A stretch of DNA of 64,000 nucleotides from Hyphochytrium catenoides (lineage: Eukaryota; Protista; Hyphochytriomycota). The notes below the pieces were generated by a model that did not search any database, was not told the origin of the DNA, and worked only from the letters and a program-made list of their open reading frames with translations. Shown here in pieces: positions 4,919 to 52,500 of the stretch (the first letter of the stretch is position 1; each line of letters starts with the position of its first letter). The position numbers were made by a program, and so were the translations under genes. Location: assembly GCA_900088475.1 (NCBI GenBank), contig FLMG01001021.1:1-64000 (forward strand). The letters are read 5' to 3'.

Positions 4919-6926
4919 TTAAGAAGGAGCAACCTTCTTAGAACCAGTCAAATTTAAACGGTTGCTGGCTGGTAAATCATCGTCATTCTGGCTCTCGAAA
5001 GCAATTAGCTTCGTCTGAGCAACGCTGGTTGTCGACTGTGTTGCCTCTCCGCCACCATCCATTGCCACAGCCTCTCTACTGATACCCTGTCTTGTAAGAA
5101 AACGGTTGAAGGGATCAAGAAGCATCTGATAAACTTGCAGCTCCACTTTTTCGAAGAAGTCTTTGTCCACATTTTGCTCTGTCAAAGCCCGCAGTTTGTC
5201 TTTGATCACCGTTTTCAATGTCGAACTAATATTGATCTCCATTGAGGCGGCGGGGAGTAGATAAATCTCTCCTATCTGTTGAGCCAGCCTGAGCATTTCA
5301 GAGCTACTTCTTGCTTGTCTGAACTTGAGAACAGCGATAGCAAAGAGAATGTTTTCACCTATAAATAAGATGGTGATACTTGTTAGTCAAGAGCTCTTCT
5401 ATCACATAGAAGGAACTATGTTCTTATGCTCCTCTCTAGCGAACAACAAAGTGAGAGAAGCAACTGACAGAAAGGCGTACGATTGAGCGACCCAGAGACT
5501 TGCTGAACAAGGGCAATAATCGGGAGGACGTACAACAAAACTCCTTGATAAGATAGTCCTTAAACTGGATAATAACTGGTTCGTTCTTCGGATGGCTGAT
5601 GACCGTTCTGAGTTGGGAGATGCTCTTGATACTAAAGACAGCGCCAAGGTCTTCTCTCCTGCTTCCTAACTTGGAAGATGACTTTCTTGCGGCAAGCTGC
5701 CTCTTTTCCTCTTTGTATGTCAAATAGAGAGGGTAGAACCCACAGATAACCGTGTACCCGAAGTAGATGCAAGCAAAGAGTATCCTTTCCAGGTCTTGAA
5801 TAATAACCACACTGATGAACATGTTGATCACACGGAATGGTATACCCAGCAGGAAGACCAAGAGAGTCAATATTTTGAACTGCTTCTTGAGCTCGAACTC
5901 CTCCTCCACATGGCGGATAATGTAGCCAGTATATAGGATGATGCTGCAAACGATGAAGGGAGTCACGATTTGACTGTACACCTAGATTCAACAAAGGGGA
6001 CACCGACACAGGTCGTATCGTGGGAAAGGCGGCTGGTCAGGAGAAGGGTCGTGGGGCTTATGTCTACTGGCATTGGAGCAGGACACGGTAGGCCTCAAAT
6101 TAGCGGATAAGAAAGATTTTAGCCCTAAGCATGAGAAGAAAGGAAAACGAGCTAGGTACTCAAGCAGCACCTAATGGCACTTCATAAGAGGGCGAAAACG
6201 CAATAGGCTGAACGGATAGCCGACGACAGAGGAAAGATGGCCGATGACGGTTGACAGTGAGTCTTCATAAAGAGACTAACAACAAAGCGTCTGCTCTTCT
6301 GGTCTCCTGAGCATTCCCTCTTCCAACTCTGTCATCTCCCCTGGCCGGCTACCCATCTTAGCCTCAACTTGTTAGGATACTACTGCACTTACCGCTGCTG
6401 ACGACTTTCCCTGGCAAGTGGCTTCATCGACGTTATTGTCATAGTAATCCATCAACGTGGTTACAGGCGATTGGATGGCAACGACATACATCACCACGTA
6501 CATGCTGCAGGTATAGAGAAGCCCATTTCTCCTTTTCTTGGCGCTGCTAAGCCCTGCTGCACCTCCCTTTGCAGCTCCAGCGCCTGCAGCGTTCGCCTTA
6601 AGCTGTGCTGTCTGAGAGTAGTAGATATACCACAGGTGGACGAGCTGGACCTCAAACGCAGGGACAGCGGGGAAATAACCCAGGGAGCTAAGGAAAGCGG
6701 CATTGAGCCCATAACAGCCAGTGCCTATGAGCTTGTATATAAACTTGAAGAGGTAACTGTACACGGAGAGTGGGGCGCCGAGATGTGTCAAGATTGGCCA
6801 GATGACTGGAACGGCAGTGATCGGATAGATACTTCGACGGATATAGAACATCACGGCCACATAAAAACCTGAAATGGTGCTAATCAGGAACCAAACCAAA
6901 CAGAAATATTCGAAGGCGGTCGCCAT
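4919..6926 (-). CDS. 7-transmembrane RGS protein (7TM-RGS); exons 6926-6393, 5981-5534, 5358-4919
   Basis: Spliced product has seven hydrophobic segments, then the RGS signature FKDYLIKEFC|CENILF...IGEIYL...EINIS...FEKVELQVYQML.DPFNRF. Both introns are GT-AG and preserve frame. Confidence 0.9.
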
Positions 6927-8865: not shown

Positions 8866-11800
8866 TTACTTCCAGCTTGTTCCAAAGGTAGCGAACTTCT
8901 TTGAGAACTCTTCTCCTAGAGCTGTAAACGCTGCAAGAAGATCCTCGTCTCCCCTTCCAAGATGGCCATTATCAGACATGTAAGGGCCGTCGAATTGCTG
9001 TTCGTCCTCTAGCTCAGATGCGAGACCATAGAATTGCCTCAACGCCACTACGATGGCCTTCAGTCCCAACTCAAAGTCCCTCAACGCCTGCCAGGCATCG
9101 CTCTCTCTTATAAGGTTGTCCTCAATGATCGTCCGTCGCTGGCCGTGTTTAAAATAGTCATGTATGTATGCGTTCACGCGGGTGCGATCTGCAGGGTCAT
9201 TTGCAACCATAGGTATGGCACTAACAACTAGAGAGGCACGTGAGTCCACATGTCTAGCCAAGTCGTCGAGAGATCGAAAAGAGTCACCTCGGGGGCAATT
9301 GACAGCGGAGAATGGACATTGCGCAACGTAGTCCACTTTACTCTGTCTCAAGAGCTCCTCAATTTTTGAAGATATAGGACCCGAACAGTTAAAGATGCTC
9401 TCCCCACTTGAGACATCAAAGGCAAAGGGCACACTGCTAAGCGGAAGATGACACAGATCCGTCTGGCTCCTAATGGTTTCCATGTGGCGGACGCATCGAG
9501 CTGTTAAGATCTGCCTAACCCGGCTATTTACGTCACCCAAACCTGCCACAACTTCGATCGGTAGGTCTTCTAGGATGATGCTGGAGCTCGAACGCGATGC
9601 TAGACTCTTCATGGGTGCGACTCTGTGTCTAGGAATAAGCTTCCGGTTGAATAGATGACAAAGGACCAATAGAAGATCTCTGAGACAGGTCATCCTCCTG
9701 TCTGGGTTCCTCCTCGTCGCCTCACAATACCCTCGGGTCATGTCATGGAATAACCCCAAACGAAAGAGCTCGCAAAAGGCCAAGTTCCCAGGCTCCTTAT
9801 AGTGCAGATGCATGACAAGCCCGGCCAAATTGATAGGAACGCCTTCGACATTCAGGACAGACAGATTACGAAGAATGTCTACTGCCGAGTCCAAAAAGAA
9901 ACCGAGAGTATCCGAATCCTTATTCGTTCCCGAACGGTACAGCGACTTCCACAGAAGGTTCGTTATGAGAGCATCAGGTTTCATGACACTGTGAGCACCC
10001 AGACGTCGGACGCTGCCGGGCATGTGTGGCAGATAGTTATATGCTCTCAGGTTAAAGAGGCGCAAGACGTGGGTAACGGAGAATGGAAAGCTCCCCTTAA
10101 TCTCAGGCAATTCGGAGCAAACAAGGCGGTCGATTTTAGCTGGAGGGACACCAATGAAGATCACATTGCCCTTCAGGTCGAAACCTCGCCTGCCTGCCCT
10201 GCCTGATGTCTGGTGGTATTGCCCAGGCGTCAAGAAGATGCTGTCGCCCGTCATGACTGCTGTGCGGCAGGGCATGTTTATACCCAAGGCCAGAGTACCG
10301 GTGGCAAAGACCACTTGCAAATGGCGCTTTCGCATGAGGACTTCAACTGCCGCTAAGTATTTCCGAGGCATGCCGGCGTGATGGATCCCGATGCCCCGCC
10401 GTAGAGCGTTATGCAGCAAGAAAGCAGTCGGCTTATCAAGCTGAGTCATAAACGGCTCACAAAGCTCGTTGAGTTCCTGCATATGGATAGCAGACTGACG
10501 TGGGGTAAAGGTGAACCTCATATCAGGATCGTTAGGATGGAAGCACTCCATCTCTGGGTCCACAGAAAAGGGCTCAGCATCATTCAAAGTTGCCTTTCCG
10601 GCATCTCTCTTTCCGTTCGGTGATTTAAGACGAGTAGCCTTCCTTTTCTCCCCGCCAGCAAGGGTTGCTGTTTCTCGCTGTTTCTTCAAATATCGTCGCT
10701 TTGCTGCTTGATAAGCCTCCCATCTGGCCACTTTGTCAGCCCACTGCGCGGACAGTCTAATTTTCTTTTCTTCCTTAGCCAATCTGGCCGTCATATAGCT
10801 CAGGAGGTTCCTGCATTGTAAGCGGTCAAAGTTGAAGCAGATGGCTGGGAGCATATCCTTTTCTTTCAGAGTCATCAACAAGTCGTAGACCTCGGACGGC
10901 TTGCATATGCCTTCCTCTTCCTTCCTCTCCCATTTATCCCGGCCCTCCCGGAGACGAGAAACTATACCATGGAACAAGTCTCGGTTTCCTGCATCAAGTA
11001 GTCGTCCTAAGAAAGACCTCAACCGACGCTCGTACATGTGGATGTCCAATCGATCTAAGATCCTATCGCCCAGGGCCTGACCAATATCTATCGTCTCTTC
11101 CTCAGGAATCTGGAGGCGACGCTCTAGGTCCTGCAGAGTATCCGGCTGCCCACTTTGGCGGGCGGTCGCGGACTGCTGCTGAAGAACAGCGTTAATTGCT
11201 TGAAATGCTTCATAACATTCTGCAGAGCTTAGTGTCACAGTGGTAGGAACTCGGTACTTAAATGGCGCAGCGGTTCCTAAAGCGGATACTGATGATAACC
11301 CTCCCAAAGCCGTTGAGGATGCTCTCATAGTGGCGATTGTCAAGCAGCCCCAAGGATGAATGGGGCGGAGAGTAGCTCCTTGCCAAAGCCCTTTTCCTTT
11401 CAAAGACTTGTCATCATGGGGACCAGCAAGCTGCGAACCGCTGTATACAAACTTCGCCAAGTCAGCGTGCCGATGGCGGCAGGGGATGTATTGGAGCTCG
11501 TCTGTTTCCTTATCCTCTTCCTTCAACCGCTTCCTAGCCAACCCATAGTACTGACGCTTGTTCTGTCGCTTCAAGCCCCCCAGCCATGAGCAGAAGGAGT
11601 CAGGATCGCCGAGAGTCGCGGAGAGGCATACGATCGGCACTGGGCACATGAGAATTAACCTTTCCCAAACGACGCCGCCTTCAAGAGAGCCCATAGATTG
11701 AATCTCGTCAAAAATAATCCGTCTGATGCTGTGCGTGAACTTCAGATGAGCTAGACAAGTGCCAGATAATAGGAGGATCTCTAGCATCTGCGGAACTGTG

Positions 11801-14800
11801 ACAAGTACCCGGCAGTCCAACGGATGGTATCGATATTCCCGAGTCCATATTCCAACTAAAGCGCTTGAGTTCCTCTCGCTCTCCGACGTTTTAGGGACTG
11901 CGCTCTTGAATTTATTGTACACCTCCGCTGCTACTTGGTTGACCAGAGCTTTAGTGGGTGCCACGTAGACCACCACGCCTTCTGGGTCTTCGACATCCCG
12001 TAGTACTTTCTCCATTGCATAGTAAGCAATGAAGGTCTTGCCTGAAGAGGTTGGAGCGTCAACCAGCACGCTCACACCCTTGTCTACAGCATCTAGCAGT
12101 TTGACTTGCCACTCATCAGGCCTAAAAGGTACACGATGGTCTTTTTTTGAACCCACAAGGCGCTGACGGCTCAGTAAGGGTCCCATATGGAGCATCTGAA
12201 AGGCTGTAGGATGCATTTCCAAGGAGCACACCCTCCAAGTCTCAGCCTCCTTCAGTGCGGAAAACCCCCTAAGAGGAGGAAGATGATAGGGCCTTTCCAG
12301 GTCGAAGTAGTTACGGTTAGCTCTATATGATTTCCGCAGACACCTAGACCGCTTGGCCAAGAGCTCTGGCGATTGAGACCTCAGTCCAAGGGTAAGGCAA
12401 TCATCACTGCTTCGTGAAGGTAGATAGATTGAGAACCCCAGCAGCTCAAAAACAAGCTCCATCTCCTCCCGCCGGTCGCTCGAAAGTTCGAGCGAAGAAT
12501 GAACCCCCTCCGCTAATAAACAATCTACCAGCATGAAGACATGGGCTCCAAGATGTAGGGAATCCTCCTTCATGCCAGTGCTTGCTTGCTCTGTCAAAAT
12601 AGTCTCTGCAGTGTCTCTGAGTCGCAGCCTCGCCTCAATATAGCGCTGCACGGTGATGCGCAACTCGAGCCAGAGAAGTTGCAGTCGAATGGCTACCACC
12701 TCTGGGGCTTCGGCGTCGTCGAAAGCGTCGTTTACCTTTCTCTGTGCCTCAATGATGCCCAACGCCATAGGCACGCCCTGACTACCTTGCGACACCAGCC
12801 CCTCATGTGCTTGTAGCAGCTGTTCGAACGCTTTTTTCACCCTTCTTCCAATCTCTTCTCGCCTGGCCTTATGCAAGATCTCCTCCCTCTTTGATTCAGT
12901 CTTCTTCTTCTTGCCCTTAGACTCCTTCTTGATCACCTCAGAGGACGACGAGCAAGGGTTTGCAACGCGAGTTGCAGGGGGCCAGGCAGTATCTCCAGCT
13001 ACGGTCTCCCTCCTCATGAATGACCCCTTTCCAGACGACAGGGACTGAGCGTATCGTTCCAGATGACGAGCGAACGTCTGCTCGTTTTTGAGCTCCCAGA
13101 AGGTTTTTTGCTTCTTGGAAGCGTCGTCAGTCTCTAGCTCCTTATAGCTATGCCAATGCATGGTGTCACGATGGGTAACTGTGGAGAAGGGCAAAGGAGG
13201 ACGGTAAGAGGAATTTAGGGGCTGGCATTTTCAAAGAAGGTGAAACAAGGGTGCTGCAAAGAAGACGTTGGGAGAGCAGGGATGGATAATTATTACTAAG
13301 CCCAGGCCACGCACCTCCTTCAGACTTCCCAAGAAGCGTAACTTCTGCCAGCATGTTTCCATCGTCCCATCCAGGGAGGAGATGGTGTCCGGTAAACTTC
13401 TCGTCTACTGGCGAGTTGCTCGTTGAGGAAGAAGATAGAAACTGGTTGAAAAAGGCATTCTGAAGAGGACCCACAAGTAGCTTGGGCGGCGGAGACGATG
13501 TTCGAGCTCCTCCTACTACTATTGTTTTCATTGCAATGCTGTGTTCTTCGTAGCCATCCTCACTGGAAGAGGTCGCTTTTAGAGTAGAAGACGCCAGCAG
13601 TGGGGATTTGCAATGCGCAACAGAGCAGACGAGTTCTGGCCATGTCCCACTTCGCTGCTTTCCCGCATAAGCAAGTACCAGCCCCCATAGCTGACCATGA
13701 ACTTGTTGAATTGCTGGATGAAGGTCTTCCCAGCGCAACTCCTCGTTCACTACGAGTTGAACCAACTCTAGGAGTAATGACTCATCTACAAGGTCGAAGA
13801 TATCTCTGCTGCTTTCCCCACCATGAGAAAGTGCAGAGTAAGAACCACATGCGGAATTATCCTCCACCTGGCACGGTGGGTGCGTTTTTTCTCTTTGTGA
13901 ACCCGCCGCCTCCCCTAACCAAGGAAGGAAGAGAGCTCTGATGCCGTCTTCTGATGTCAGAAGCCCGTAGGTCACGCCGTACAACTCCATTAGCAGACCT
14001 CGTACCGTGTTTCGCACCTCCCGATGAATAGCTACTGGAGTCATCATTCGGCTCCTCCATCTCAGCGGAATGGCATGGAGCATTAGTTGCTGAGCTAGTA
14101 GTACTTGAAGAACTAACTCGGTTAGGGCTTGAGCCGCAGAAGGAGAGGTCTGACTGTTATCAGGTTGACACTCCTTTCCCTCGAGCAGATATAGAGTGAT
14201 GAGGAGCCTACTAGTAACACTGTTTTGCAGGGCCTGCTGGTTGTTAATGACCTCCGAGTATCCGCGTAGCCGGCCACGCAAGGCTTGGACTTGCTCTTGT
14301 TCAGCCAAGCTGGTCAGCGAGTTATTCCTGAAGTAACTTAGAAGGCTCAGCCTTGCCTTTTTCAACTCTTCGCCATCAACCAAAGCGCGGACCACACTCA
14401 GAAGTTGCCTGTTTCTGTACGAGTGTCGGCAGTATTCTGCATTGGCAACTACTCTTGAGCCTTCGAAGGAAATATCAGGGAGGAAAGCGATTGACATATC
14501 CCTACTATGACACTCATCCATGAAGCCCTCCATAAGGATAGAGTACGCCTTTTCAGCTGAAAGAAGGGGTTTCTTCTTCTCCTGTACAACGGGTCCAAAG
14601 ACCAGCGCGAAGAGTGGAGAATTGTCCTTCAGATAGTGGTCCCAATCGGTTTCTTCCATCATCTCAACCTCGTCTGTCCGATCTTCAGCGTCGATCGCCA
14701 GAGGAGTGAGCCAGCTGGAAAGACTTACAAGATGGATATCTGTGTTCAAGCTCAAATGCTGGCGAACAATCTCCCTAAAGGCTAACCGTCTTGGGTCATT

Positions 14801-15145
14801 GAGGGACAACGCGAGGCCGTGATCCTCAAAAAAGACGACGTGGAAAACAGCGCCACAGTCCCGCAGACTGGCCAAGAACTTCTCTACTAAATGCACGAGA
14901 TAGAGCAACGACGCCTCGTCGCTTGGGGTTACAGGTAAATCGTATTTTGCAGCGTTGGGTTGGAGCCAGAAGTAAGCGAGAAGGCTGTCTCCGTCGATGA
15001 AAAAGAGATCTCGTCCTCCAAAGTCTCCAATCAAATCCACCCGTTGAAGAAAGCCGAGAGAAGGCTTCAAATGGGACGGGTCGCTTGTGGCAGCCCTAAC
15101 AGCAGCCTTCTGTTTGGCCTTCTGATGCATTGCCGTCTTGCTCAT
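8866..15145 (-). CDS. DDX60: DDX60-like Ski2-family RNA helicase (~2050 aa) with one intron at 13179-13314
   Basis: N-terminal DLIGDFGG.DLFFIDGDSLL and HWH motifs typical of the DDX60 family. Helicase motifs APTSSGKT, VYVAPTKALVNQV, DEIQ, LSAT, GIGIHHAG, ATGTLALGINMP, QTSGRAGRRG. The GTGCGT...CCACAG intron joins the two ORFs in frame (EG-VTHRD). Confidence 0.92.
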
Positions 15146-40435: not shown

Positions 40436-41165
40436 CACTCCACAGTGCCACACTTTTGGCTTGCCTATCTAGTCAACTTTAGCTACCTAGCCCCAGTTCT
40501 TTTAAAGGTACCCTGCGTTTAGCCCTGCTCAACCACTGCTTCCTAAGCTTTCTTACTCCAACAACTGCGTGGCTCAAAATCGACTCTTGCTTCTAGCTTC
40601 TCTATCTGTTGGAAACGCACTCTGCTCGTCTTCTCGACTCCAAAAGCTAACAGCCAATCTATCGGCCTCCATAAGTATCAATCTTCGCCTCTATCCCCTG
40701 CAAGTGGTAGTAGCAGGCAGCTCTGCTGCTCACATCATCAGAATCTATCCTCTAATCGGCACTGACAGCATAGACAGAGCAATGGGTAATATGGGTAACA
40801 ACCAGCGAGTACTCCAGATGTATGGCGCAGAGTATGGTCAGACATCGACCCATAATCCATTAGTTCACAATGACCCGACCGTACGGGCGCCACAATCGAT
40901 GAATTGAGCTCTTCTTGAGTAAACCCAGATAACCTGGTGGACTTTTCCCGCCAAACCAACGACCACGAAGTTTCTGCACTACGAAATAATAGGAGAAGTG
41001 AAGATCTTTCGCCGCGTCTCATTGCTGTCTGCTGGAAGAAGCATTTCTGAAGCTTTCTGTTCCGGAGCTGAAGCTGTGCTGAGGGTTCTCAGGGTCGATG
41101 GCCAGAGACAGCCCTCTTCGAACTGCTTACTTTTCTCTTGGAAGAGGCACTGGGAAGACAACAGC

Positions 41166-42665
41166 ATGATGATGAGTGTGGGATGGAAGGATTGGTGCGA
41201 TGGCCGTGTCAAGGGCTTTTTTAATGTTCACCCGCATGAAATATCGGCAGAAACGACAATAGAGAGTCTCGAGCTTCTACTATTGGAGAAAGCTAAGATC
41301 AGTCTTGACAGGGGTGTCTTTCTTCAAAAAGGCCACTTAAAGCTTAATGGCTCAGCCTTGGACCGCGATGCCAAGGTGCAGTCTTTTCTCCCGTTCTTTA
41401 CGGCACCATACCCAAGATTCAGCATCACTCTAAGAAAGGAGCCGAATGGAGGCATAGTTAAGGTCAGAGTGCCCGACGGTCAAGTGCTTACTCTTGTTCT
41501 CTCATCTCTGGAGGTGTCATACATAAAGCAAGAGCTCCGCTCTCGTGGACAGGTTCCCAAGTCGCACCAACGGCTCACCCATGATGGGCGGGAACTTGAT
41601 AAGGGCAGTTTGCACGACTATGGGTTAGCAGGTGACACTGTGACTCTGGTTTTGGAAGTCAAGGAGCCTACCAACCGGCAAGACAAGGAGATTCAGATCC
41701 AGGTCAAGACGCTGATAGGAAAGACCTTAACCCTACCTCGAATCCATTCTATGGACTCTGTTTCGAGGATCAAGGACTTTATCGCGTCTCAAGAGGGTAT
41801 TCCTGCGGACCAGCAGCGTTTAATATATGAGGGCCGGCATCTTGAAGATTGGAAGCTGTTGAAGGACTATCAGATTAGGGAAGGGTCGATCGTGATGATG
41901 GTCTTGCGGTTACGGGGAGGAGGGGGTGGTTTTCCCTTCGCTGATGTCACAAGCTCCTCGCACATTACCATCAACTGGTTTTCAGGCTCTGCGCCAGAGT
42001 GGAGACGTTGTGACCGGGGACTGAACCTTGAAGGGCTCTGTCGGCGCAAGGGCTGCAAAGCGTTTGGGAGTATGGTGATCTCTCCACAGGGCTACACAGC
42101 CTTTAACGTTGTAAAGCAGGAAGTAACCTGTCCAATCTGCAAAGATCCCATTCAACCTGTGACGTGCGGCTTCTACGACTGTCTATGGCGCTTTGAGGGG
42201 ATAAAGACAGGCACCACCTATCACCTCAGTGGCACTCTTACCGAGGCTCTGGGAGAGAGATACCATCGTGTATCCTCCGATCTAGACAATATGGTGGGTT
42301 GGGATGACCTGGTAATTAGTGCTCAGCAATCTGCAAAGGAAGGATTCTGTGTCATCTGTCAAAACAGCTTTTATGGGAGGGATGAGACGATGTTGACGGA
42401 GTGCGGTCATCCTTTCCATTGCGTCTGCTTTGAAGCCTGGAGAGATATTCGACAGAAGCAGCAGACAACGGTATGCTGCCCCCAGTGTAGAGGCACCGTA
42501 AGTTCTACCTCGCCTTCTAAGTGCGCCCAGAAGGTATGCCCGACCGAAAAACAGCTTCCTTTCCAGCCTCAAGAAGAGCCTGCAAAGGGAGATCTGAAGC
42601 GGAGCACTCCGTTGCCGGAGGTACCCCAAAAAAACAAGAAAACCCGACTTACTACCAAAGCATGA
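41166..42665 (+). CDS. Intronless polyprotein: 2-3 ubiquitin-like units (last ends LRLRGG), Cys-rich domain, RING-H2 finger, basic NLS-like tail
   Basis: Ubiquitin-like unit at 41691-41921; APEWR...GLNLEGLC..C...CPIC...TCGF.DC.WRFEG; CVIC...CGHPFHCVC...CPQCR; PQKNKKTRL. First in-frame ATG at 41166. Confidence 0.88.
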   Translation: MMMSVGWKDWCDGRVKGFFNVHPHEISAETTIESLELLLLEKAKISLDRGVFLQKGHLKLNGSALDRDAKVQSFLPFFTAPYPRFSITLRKEPNGGIVKVRVPDGQVLTLVLSSLEVSYIKQELRSRGQVPKSHQRLTHDGRELDKGSLHDYGLAGDTVTLVLEVKEPTNRQDKEIQIQVKTLIGKTLTLPRIHSMDSVSRIKDFIASQEGIPADQQRLIYEGRHLEDWKLLKDYQIREGSIVMMVLRLRGGGGGFPFADVTSSSHITINWFSGSAPEWRRCDRGLNLEGLCRRKGCKAFGSMVISPQGYTAFNVVKQEVTCPICKDPIQPVTCGFYDCLWRFEGIKTGTTYHLSGTLTEALGERYHRVSSDLDNMVGWDDLVISAQQSAKEGFCVICQNSFYGRDETMLTECGHPFHCVCFEAWRDIRQKQQTTVCCPQCRGTVSSTSPSKCAQKVCPTEKQLPFQPQEEPAKGDLKRSTPLPEVPQKNKKTRLTTKA

Positions 42666-49598: not shown

Positions 49599-52500
49599 TC
49601 AGCTGCTGATTTTGTGACACTTCTTGAACTTCTTCCCGGATCCACATGGACATTTCTCATTGGGTCCAACCTAAAATATGCGACCTCAATACACAGAAAC
49701 ATTGGTCAGTTAGATAGAAATGTCCCCACCTTCGGAGCGACGGCCTTAGCCTTCGTGCCGAGTTCCCGCAGTGAGACTGGGCCAGAGCTCGCTCCGTTCC
49801 GCTCGTCCCTCTCTACACTTCGGCTCAGGGGTTGGCCCGCGGGCTGCCACTTTGGAAAGCTATATGAAGGCAAGCGTCCATAGACGGGCTCATCGAGTCT
49901 CATCTTCTGGAACTGCTGAGCGTAGACGTCCTCGAACGTTACCCTCCCTTTCTCCCCCATGCCTCCCATTTGCCCCCATAAGGAGCTGAGGCCTTTTAGC
50001 CCCGAGCTTTCTGGTCGGTGAAAGGAAGGTGGAACTGCTTGTGCTCCATTTGTGGACGAGGCAGGCGGAGGTGGATCCAAACCTTTTGCTTTCGCAAAGC
50101 ACTGCGAACACATCCCCTCGGTCTCTGGCCTACGAAAAGGTTGCCAAGAAACTTTGAATGTCAGACGTGATGATAAGGAATTGGGCAGAGAGGTATGCAG
50201 GACAGAGAACCAAGACCCACAAAATGGTGGGCCTAACAGGACGAATGCTGAGCGGCCGAGACCAAGAGAGATGCGCCGATAGGCAGTGTGATAGCAAGCT
50301 TAGAGCTGACCTTCCGTAAAAGCCGCAGCTATTAAGGCAAAGGGAAGGTTTGGAAGGTACGGACGAGCTAGCTAATAGCTCTCGGTTCTCTTTTGCGTCC
50401 TCTTCCTGTCTACTGGCAATTCCTAGGTTGTCATCCTCTTCAGTCGGTTTTGGCTGTTTCTTTTCTTCCCTTTTTTTCTGCCGAGCTAACCTCTTCGCTA
50501 ACTGCTTCCTTTAGAATGGAAAGACAGAGTGAGGTATGTTTTGGAGAAAGGTCAACTTTTTAGACATAAAGCGGCAAAAGGATGGGATGGACAAAGGCAG
50601 TCAAGCCACAAGGAAGCACTCAACAAGAGTGTGAGGTGATGAACGTCCTAGAGATAGGAGCATGGCTCTGACGCTACCGACGCACTCTGTAAGTTCTACA
50701 CCATCGCCAGTCCCTGAAGTAGCAGTTAAGTTTTCTCTTTGATAAAATAGCATGTAAGCCTTTTGCCGAAAGACTTCCGCCTTCGACACCGGTTCAATCT
50801 GGAACAGTGAGAAGCTATGAGGGACACAGGGAGTACGCATACATGTATACTTTCTTTCTCACTGGTGCTTTGGCCCTGTCAGACCCCAATGCTACTTTCA
50901 AACATGGCCAACACTTCCCATAAGTCTCGCACAGAGGACCCCAAGTTTTAGACCGGTCTCAGGCACTTAAAGGCCCTTCAGCACCAGAACACTCGGCATC
51001 CTTACCTTATCATCATCTATCCTATTCCAGGTCCTTTTGGAGTCTCTAACATAGCAAACATAATGGCCAAAGGAGGATGACTGAAAGAGGTCCAAATGCA
51101 CTAGTACTGCATACAGACTATAGCGGGGGCGGTCGCCGATGCCTTCAACAATACAGGAGGCAGGTAGAATGACAAAGTTAGGGTTGAGGGCAGAATGTAA
51201 CAACCAGGGACACTTTTACCATGCGACATGTACGGCCCCAAATCGAGCGTTTCCTTGAACGCTATGTCCTTATTAAGCTGGTTCGATATGAAGGAAAGCA
51301 AAAAACGACCAGGTTAGGACGTACCATTGAATAAAATAGAGAGCCAAGGCTCCTTAGCAACGTTAAGTAGAAAGGGAAAAAAGTGAAACAACAATTTTCT
51401 CTTCCTCGGTTGAGCGTCTCGCCAGCAATAGAGAAAGCAGAGAGTCGTTCAGGGTGAGAGAAAAGCACACGAGCGGACAAGAGAGGGAAGTTGAGTCAGA
51501 CTAATGTTGCAAGAAATTTTCCACACTAGTTGCCCTGTACCCCACCGACGATAATAGGACAGGGCCATCTGCAGCAGGCGTAAACAAACGGGCAAGAACC
51601 GAAAGGGCATAGAGCTCCAGACTTGAAAAGACACGATGAAGGTAACACGTCAAGGTGCATAAAAGCAGTGACGAGGTACCTTCCCATACAGTCCAGGTCG
51701 GAACCTCTTCAAGTGAACCAATAGTATATTTGAAGCTTCGCACACAGTGATCTGTTTTCTTCCCTGCACCTCCTCTCGGCATCCTGAGCACCGAAACTTG
51801 TTAGAGCGGTCCAGTACCTCTGGGCGGGTGAAAGCCTCCAGACATTCCTAGATCATCTCAGGGTTAGTGCATCCGGGAAAAGAGTACACCAAAGGCACAA
51901 TGGCATCTGCCAAACGCGATATATATCTTTTTCGCTTAGAGTTAGCGAAAGCTGGCGAAAGGCTAGGGTCATTGTAAAGAACAATTGCACGCAACAACGC
52001 CCGTTTAAGTGGCCACGCATGAGACAAGAGCTCATCGTGACCCTATAAGTCGAAAAACTGGGCGAAGTGGTATCTGATCAGTGATATAGGCTAAGCACAT
52101 AAGGGAGATGCAGAGAACAATGACTTATAGCACAACTACGCACCTCAACGCTATCCGAGACCTCTACCTCTAGGGAGAGATCTCGAAAATCTGTATATTT
52201 ACTGCTTTCATGTTGGCAGCTACTGCAGATGAGCTGGTCCTGAAGTTTTCCGTTGAAAATCTGCCAAAGAGAAGAGTAACAGGAGGAAATTAGGCACCGG
52301 ATGGGTGACAGCAAACAAGACGTAGCGAGATTGCAGCTAACTGGCACTTCTCCACATAAGACGGGTGAAGTTGGGCAGGCCGCTGGCAAGTATTACTACC
52401 TGAGAGATTGCTGATGTCTCCTGCACCTCGAGTGTGAGAGTCGGGTCTGTGCTGCTCCGCTATGGATGGAGGGAGCAAATTAGCGAAGAGCCAACGTGGA

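Follow-up and report, generated by a model that had tools for sequence, protein, structure and literature searches.

The window analysed here, 64,000 nucleotides of the protist Hyphochytrium catenoides (Hyphochytriomycota; contig FLMG01001021.1, positions 1 to 64,000), carries a gene whose product joins ubiquitin-like domains (Ubls) to a RING finger in one chain. The gene was read as a single open reading frame (ORF) at 41166-42665 of the forward strand, running without interruption through 499 codons plus a stop, and its start codon at 41166 was placed by aligning homologues whose N-termini read M..V.WKD. An initial annotation of this DNA had described the product, hereafter the window protein, as a polyprotein in which two Ubls and a ubiquitin-like unit ending in LRLRGG are followed by a Cys-rich domain and a RING-H2 finger. 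This layout was borne out by the intact ORF and by matches to Pfam, and its parts are collected in Table 1. The exact window protein has no identical entry in the public protein collection.

Table 1. Parts of the gene and of its product, with residue numbers in the protein and nucleotide positions in the window
Feature	Residues	Position	Strand	Basis
Whole coding sequence, 499 codons plus stop, intronless		41166..42665	+	ORF reading
N-terminal domain, probably beta-grasp, without GG tail	1-92	41166..41441	+	Atlas-model fold match
Second Ubl, tail LVLEVKEP, no GG	about 96-170	41451..41675	+	Second Pfam ubiquitin stretch
Ubiquitin-derived third unit, 54% identity to ubiquitin	176-252	41691..41921	+	Pfam, alignment
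LRLRGG tail, predicted cut after G252	247-252	41904..41921	+	Alignment, family conservation
Linker GGGFP	253-257	41922..41936	+	Translation
Cys domain, begins FADV	258-390	41937..42335	+	Profile, model
RING-H2 finger	395-442	42348..42491	+	Pfam zf-RING_2, ligand pattern
Low-complexity basic tail, missing from homologues	443-499	42492..42662	+	Alignment

The third unit is derived from ubiquitin. The ubiquitin family of Pfam was matched twice in the window protein (whole-protein E 1.4e-30), and the full-length PF00240 match placed aa 178-250 on profile positions 1-72 with 105.3 bits against a cut-off of 25.4. The unit aligned with ubiquitin from end to end, closing in the tail VLRLRGG, which is followed by GGG. 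It retains K6, L8, K11, K27, R42, I44, V70, R72, R74, G75 and G76, among them all the residues that had been singled out initially (L8/I44/V70, R42, R72 and K6/K11/K27). The replacements of K48 by R and of K63 by E, also recorded at that time, were seen in the alignment, and K29 and K33 are additionally replaced, by F and Q. The best 60 solved-structure matches of the unit were all ubiquitin or ubiquitin constructs, and none was ISG15. With 54% identity and four lysines replaced (K29, K33, K48 and K63), the unit is not a canonical-ubiquitin leader of the sort that supplies the ubiquitin pool.

At the other end of the protein, zf-RING_2 (PF13639) was matched at aa 395-442 with 30 bits against a cut-off of 27.3. 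The zinc ligands follow the C3H2C3 pattern C-x2-C-x14-C-x-H-x2-H-x2-C-x16-C-x2-C, which is of standard spacing, and the residues that contact the ubiquitin-conjugating enzyme (E2), namely I397, W425 and P439, are all present together with the linchpin R442. These four positions are kept in 41-56 of 64 family members and the zinc ligands in 57-64 of 64; the RING part of the predicted model matched solved RINGs with Z scores of 6-7.8. The finger is thus a RING-H2 as first called, and a predicted ubiquitin ligase (E3) module with complete zinc ligands and E2-contact residues.

Between the third unit and the RING lies the Cys domain. It contains four invariant Cys (C-x4-C ... C-x2-C) and two nearly invariant ones, and further positions are conserved as F, D, P, W, R, G, Y and W. 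Since a model of the Cys domain joined to the RING returned RING fold matches only, the Cys domain was folded and searched separately. AlphaFold2, run on an alignment of 93 sequences, gave an all-beta fold with a mean predicted local distance difference test (pLDDT) score of 97.5 and a predicted template-modelling score (pTM) of 0.90. Across the 93 members there was no match of this domain to Pfam. Against the PDB, Foldseek returned a best E of 0.12 (Hahellin), and the highest Z of an exhaustive VIA-align search was 4.4, for an unrelated fucosidase domain and in the chance range. The beta-gamma-crystallins are likewise all-beta and of similar size, but they lack the Cys/zinc pattern and any sequence similarity to the Cys domain, and kinship with them was rejected because the matches (Z 3.0-3.8 over 70-81 residues) are also in the chance range. 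An autoprotease was rejected too, since the domain folds as a beta-sandwich and none of its invariant or nearly invariant columns is a His. ZnF-UBP, a domain that binds free GG tails, was set aside as well, as none of the 93 members matched it in Pfam.

The Cys-rich domain reported after the GG unit is real, about 130 residues long and recurrent throughout a family. In the ESM Atlas its fold was found at a template-modelling (TM) score of at least 0.89 behind ubiquitin in rotifers, standing alone in a rotifer cluster of 148 aa, and in ubiquitin-domain-RING proteins of Mucoromycota. We infer that it is an undescribed substrate- or ligand-binding module. Two side observations concern its partners. 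In a rotifer cluster whose annotation is NAD(P)+-arginine ADP-ribosyltransferase (PF01129), one region matched the Cys-domain fold at a TM score of 0.67, so that the domain may pair with effectors besides RING. In the family member P0138, a match to the C-lobe of protein kinases (PF00069, E 1e-10) at aa 343-451 replaces the RING after the ubiquitin unit and Cys domain, which may be an alternative effector or a gene-model fusion.

The two units that precede the third were less uniform. The second was picked up by Pfam as ubiquitin family, in agreement with its initial description as a clear Ubl; it is missing, as an alignment gap, from the Phytophthora homologues. The N-terminal domain (N-domain), common to about 20 of the closest family clusters, had been called a degenerate Ubl. 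Comparison of its 92 residues with ubiquitin by hhalign was not significant (probability 0.2%), and no significant match was obtained to Pfam or to PDB sequences. The homologous segment of P0107, one of the two closest homologues, has an ESM Atlas model which matched beta-grasp families (SUMO, Rad60-SLD, RAWUL, ATG8/12 and TmoB) with TM scores of 0.54-0.64 over about 80 residues. The call therefore stood on the predicted fold and found no backing in hhalign or Pfam, and we regard the N-domain as a plausible, moderately supported degenerate Ubl.

A search with the whole protein was dominated by polyubiquitins, and its only informative matches were P0107 and P0119; a word-index search with aa 253-455 gave no match. 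Homologues do exist, however, and were recovered by an exhaustive search of 1.84 billion representative proteins with a Cys-domain profile. This returned 1,927 clusters (at 50% identity) at E<=1e-3, of which 961 reached E<=1e-10. The architecture is thus not peculiar to one gene. Named members come from the oomycetes Phytophthora, Aphanomyces and Achlya, the raphidophyte Heterosigma and the brown alga Pylaiella, while Atlas clusters of like fold or make-up belong mostly to Oomycota, Mucoromycota and Rotifera. Full-text literature searches in a limited collection returned no description of this family or of the Cys domain.

Nearest to the window protein among its homologues stand P0119 (Phytophthora fragariae / P. 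rubi, 389 aa, named 'hypothetical protein') and P0107 (431 aa, from metagenomic contigs), which are 37-40% identical to it and show the same order of parts minus the second Ubl. Directly upstream of the P0107 gene, a gene at 5063-5410 (+) of the metagenomic locus L001 gave a weak match to Crinkler (PF20147), which makes the contig oomycete-like; the Crinkler header is itself ubiquitin-like.

A survey of the architecture among the top 150 representatives, with the boundaries of the Cys domain taken from hidden Markov model coordinates (a regular expression for its start was too strict), confirmed the association of the parts. Of the 117 that have 75 or more upstream residues, 102 carry a ubiquitin-like unit directly before the Cys domain. 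Among the 128 top members whose upstream sequence is 30 aa or longer, 114 have a GG no more than 26 residues before the Cys domain; the GG lacks a preceding Arg or Lys in 37 of the 128, and 14 have no upstream GG. A RING follows in at least 80 of the 150 by a strict regular expression, which undercounts because Pfam finds RINGs in several of the members that it misses. The same order of parts was found across hundreds of clusters of stramenopiles, fungi and rotifers. The family is a large, undescribed and eukaryotic one with the layout of optional beta-grasp units, a ubiquitin unit with GG, a Gly-rich linker, a Cys beta-sandwich and a RING-H2.

Conservation of the GG in orthologues had been set beforehand as the test by which the idea of a processed polyprotein could fail, and the idea withstood it. 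The conservation was tabulated for the third-unit-type ubiquitin units of 102 family representatives, whose identity to ubiquitin has a median of 55% and ranges from 17 to 80%. G75 and G76 were each kept in 92%, against a mean of 53% per position, and were equalled by the core residue L50 alone; K48 was kept in 51% and K63 in 29%. The LRLRGG itself is invariant across the window protein, P0119 and P0107. When the units were grouped by identity of the ubiquitin body, the GG was present in all 43 above 55%, in 37 of the 39 at 35-55% and in 13 of the 20 below 35%, where several of the alignments fail at the tail. Diverged tails such as LSLRGG, THLRGG, LDLAGG and RMMNGG show that R72 and R74 drift while the GG stays.

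The linker between the GG and FADV is Gly-rich in the family and has a median length of 6 residues. The residue after the GG is Gly in 78 of 114 members and Pro in one, and Pro makes up 10% of linker residues. Bonds between ubiquitin and Pro are poorly cleaved. Members with several Ubls (P0129, which carries four ubiquitin-type units, P0168, P0199, P0252 and the window protein) have an RGG only on the unit adjoining the Cys domain. Finally, some members begin at the Cys domain, such as P0170, which starts MFADV, and the rotifer cluster of 148 aa, and the predicted C-terminal product is thus capable of separate existence. The conservation of the GG, the avoidance of Pro, the restriction of RGG to the last unit and the separate FADV forms together argue for selection on the junction of ubiquitin unit and Cys domain as a processing site.

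These observations bear directly on the possibility that the protein stays uncut, as a multidomain E3 in which all three units are integral Ubl domains of type II. The Ubls would then provide docking to the proteasome, ubiquitin-binding proteins or the E2 backside, or would regulate the RING in cis as in Parkin, and the GGG would serve as a hinge. Many E3s, including Parkin, UHRF1 and HOIL-1, bear N-terminal Ubl domains, and in Parkin and UHRF1 the Ubl likewise stands N-terminal to zinc-binding ligase domains of the same polypeptide. An uncut protein also finds support in the co-conservation of the N-domain in about 20 clusters, which suggests one working protein, in the members that lack an upstream GG or a basic residue before it, and in the divergence of the ubiquitin unit to 54% identity. 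Integral Ubl domains, however, normally lose the di-Gly, and those of Parkin and UHRF1 are not known to carry a conserved cleavable one, whereas in the family of the window protein it is among the best-conserved positions of the unit. The upstream Ubls of the same proteins have lost their GG, which is the outcome in the absence of selection on the tail. Pro is avoided at the very position where it would matter for cleavage, and forms starting at FADV occur independently. Parkin differs further in being a RING-between-RING (RBR) ligase, while the window protein has a plain RING-H2. We therefore consider an uncut E3 unlikely, though it deserves to be kept in view.

We hold it to be reasonably probable, by analogy with known precursors, that the gene is instead a ubiquitin-fusion precursor of a RING-H2 ligase which is cut after the GG. 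Deubiquitinases (DUBs) cut the UBA52, RPS27A and polyubiquitin precursors after G76 unless Pro follows, and by the same logic general DUBs would cut the window protein after G252. One product would be the mature E3, aa 253-499, with a new N-terminus five residues before the FADV strand. In it, the Cys domain would give specificity as a substrate- or ligand-binding module and the RING would recruit the ubiquitin-charged E2. That its newly exposed Gly is N-myristoylated was set aside, as GGGFPF departs from the usual consensus. The other product would be a chain of 252 residues with three beta-grasp units and one free LRLRGG tail. As the third unit retains L8/I44/V70, R42, R72, R74 and GG, the features read by DUBs and by ubiquitin-activating enzyme (E1), this chain could be activated and attached, and activation by an E1 of the UBA1 type is conceivable from these residues. 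With K48 and K63 replaced, the third unit could not serve to lengthen chains of those two types. It would either be conjugated or be merely a removable leader or free Ubl.

Several points weigh against such a precursor. At 54% identity to ubiquitin, recognition of the unit by DUBs and E1 is an assumption. Conservation of the Gly-rich junction might reflect a flexible hinge and not a cleavage site. A disposable leader would hardly need a conserved N-domain and an additional Ubl, and the conservation of the N-domain argues for a role beyond that of a leader, whether of the N-terminal product or of the uncut protein. We infer the structural zinc site of the Cys domain from its Cys pattern alone. 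The variants between strains, 5 synonymous and 6 non-synonymous within the coding sequence, indicate mild constraint only.

The strain data come from contigs of two runs of the same organism (X1 and X2), which span the coding sequence with substitutions only and with no stop or indel. Fragments of the gene were also present in the soil metagenome runs X4 and X6, at 41116-41386 and 42182-42472, with 0-2 differences per 151-272 bases. The coding sequence is intact there too, and the near identity means that the source organism or a close strain inhabits soil. Just 5' of the start, at 40741-41040, the X1 and X2 contigs fall into two haplotype-like versions, in which substitutions are clustered and small indels occur. 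The indel differences all lie upstream of 41040, in agreement with a start at 41166. The same data speak to whether the gene might be decaying or chimeric and not functional as a whole, for instance a ubiquitin retrocopy that landed ahead of a RING gene. An intronless gene in an apparently intron-rich genome and the fairly high ratio of non-synonymous to synonymous variants would fit such an origin. The order of parts is, however, repeated in hundreds of clusters of stramenopiles, fungi and rotifers, no stop or frameshift was seen in any run, and the zinc ligands and fold-defining residues are intact. A defunct gene is thus highly improbable.

The initial annotation had gone further and proposed an ISG15-like conjugation system encoded in one gene. 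ISG15 and FAT10 likewise consist of several beta-grasp units with a di-Gly on the last only, and ISG15 has the same LRLRGG tail and is likewise synthesised with a C-terminal extension, later removed. The tandem Ubls and the single terminal di-Gly of this proposal stood. Specific sequence kinship was not found: ISG15 and FAT10 were absent from the best 60 structure matches, and Pfam gave the general ubiquitin family only. The window protein differs from both in having three units and not two and in its non-vertebrate origin, and its C-terminal extension is a ligase of 247 aa and not a short peptide. Conjugation is hypothetical here.

In full, the proposal is that cleavage supplies a dedicated tandem-Ubl modifier together with its own cognate ligase, in the manner of ISG15 or FAT10, and that this ligase would specifically join the co-translated three-Ubl chain to targets. 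Tandem Ubls with a single C-terminal LRLRGG recur in members with differing upstream units, and the E1-relevant residues are retained in the window protein. Loss of K48 and K63 fits a modifier that does not form chains. The Cys domain adjoins the ubiquitin-GG unit in 102 of 117 members, a hint of functional coupling, and stoichiometric co-production would be a simple way of pairing a modifier with an E3. The choice of modifier is, however, made by E1 and E2 and not by RING E3s. No E1 or E2 gene was present among the scanned ORFs of the window, and no search was aimed at a dedicated E1 or E2. In many relatives the ubiquitin is near-canonical (up to 80% identity) and has no need of a private system, which is therefore unlikely as a general rule; such ubiquitin fits an ordinary ubiquitin-fusion precursor equally well. 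The drift of R72 and R74 while the GG stays is more like a protease site than like a substrate of UBA1, and the third unit is derived from ubiquitin and has no kinship with ISG15. A dedicated modifier with its own ligase is hence quite improbable.

Equally doubtful is the extension of this idea to the whole family, by which it would be a repeatedly evolved one-gene Ubl system that yields a multi-Ubl modifier and its ligase in equal amounts. If it were true, the Cys domain would recognise the modifier or its targets, and protists, oomycetes, early fungi and rotifers would own private, chain-terminating Ubl tags genetically paired with an E3. In Aphanomyces euteiches, P0145 and P0141 (AeNC1_003751 and AeNC1_003752) are adjacent genes, a tandem duplication of the ubiquitin-Cys-RING arrangement. 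Such tandem paralogues and the many divergent clusters hint at a possible role in conflict or immunity.

The ubiquitin-fusion precursor is best compared with UBA52 (ubiquitin-eL40) and RPS27A (ubiquitin-eS31), which likewise join an in-frame N-terminal ubiquitin unit ending in RGG to a cargo, with a residue other than Pro after the GG. In the family, too, the di-Gly of the junction is conserved and the residue after it is not Pro (Gly in the window protein). Cargo of ubiquitin-fusion precursors likewise occurs leaderless in other organisms. In contrast to UBA52 and RPS27A, the unit of the window protein is 54% identical to ubiquitin, lacks K48 and K63 and is preceded by two beta-grasp units without GG; its cargo is a predicted E3 with an undescribed Cys domain, and its cleavage is proposed from the analogy. 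Fusions of ubiquitin to other partners have been catalogued in algae, namely Ub-NiSOD and ubiquitin-zinc RING finger (PMC6332867, BMC Genomics 2019). The ubiquitin-RING fusions of that catalogue, from Bigelowiella natans (273 aa, two ubiquitins) and Guillardia theta (145 and 199 aa), were listed without functional study, and at 145-273 aa they are too short to hold the Cys domain.

Two further genes of the window were noted. Two adjoining long ORFs at 8866-15145 (-), with DEAD and Helicase_C domains and a DDX60-type PIN-like domain (PF23002, E 8e-14), represent a DDX60-like helicase; DDX60 is an interferon-induced antiviral helicase of animals. At 50967-51200 (-), about 8 kb downstream of the ubiquitin-RING gene, lies an ORF fragment of the USP/UCH type (PF00443, E 1.2e-7), an exon of a multi-exon DUB gene. 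A conserved linkage with a DUB was rejected, since the homologous metagenomic loci have no DUB nearby.

What is new here is a ubiquitin-fusion or Ubl-RING ligase family built around an undescribed domain, while the kind to which it belongs, the ubiquitin-fusion precursor, is known. Ubiquitin-fusion genes are known chiefly for two ribosomal proteins. The Cys domain, about 130 aa long, is well defined, confidently modelled and present in 1,927 clusters, with no Pfam entry and no solved relative. Its constant place right after the ubiquitin-GG unit leaves its function open to direct testing, and the family includes plant-pathogenic oomycetes (Phytophthora and Aphanomyces) for which genetics and proteomes exist. 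A widespread family of RING ligases is apparently made in the form of ubiquitin-fusion precursors, with selection on the di-Gly and not on the chain-forming lysines. If the cleavage is true, the family would constitute a new class of natural DUB substrates and a new route to an E3, and tandem modifiers resembling ISG15 might also stem from it in organisms other than vertebrates.

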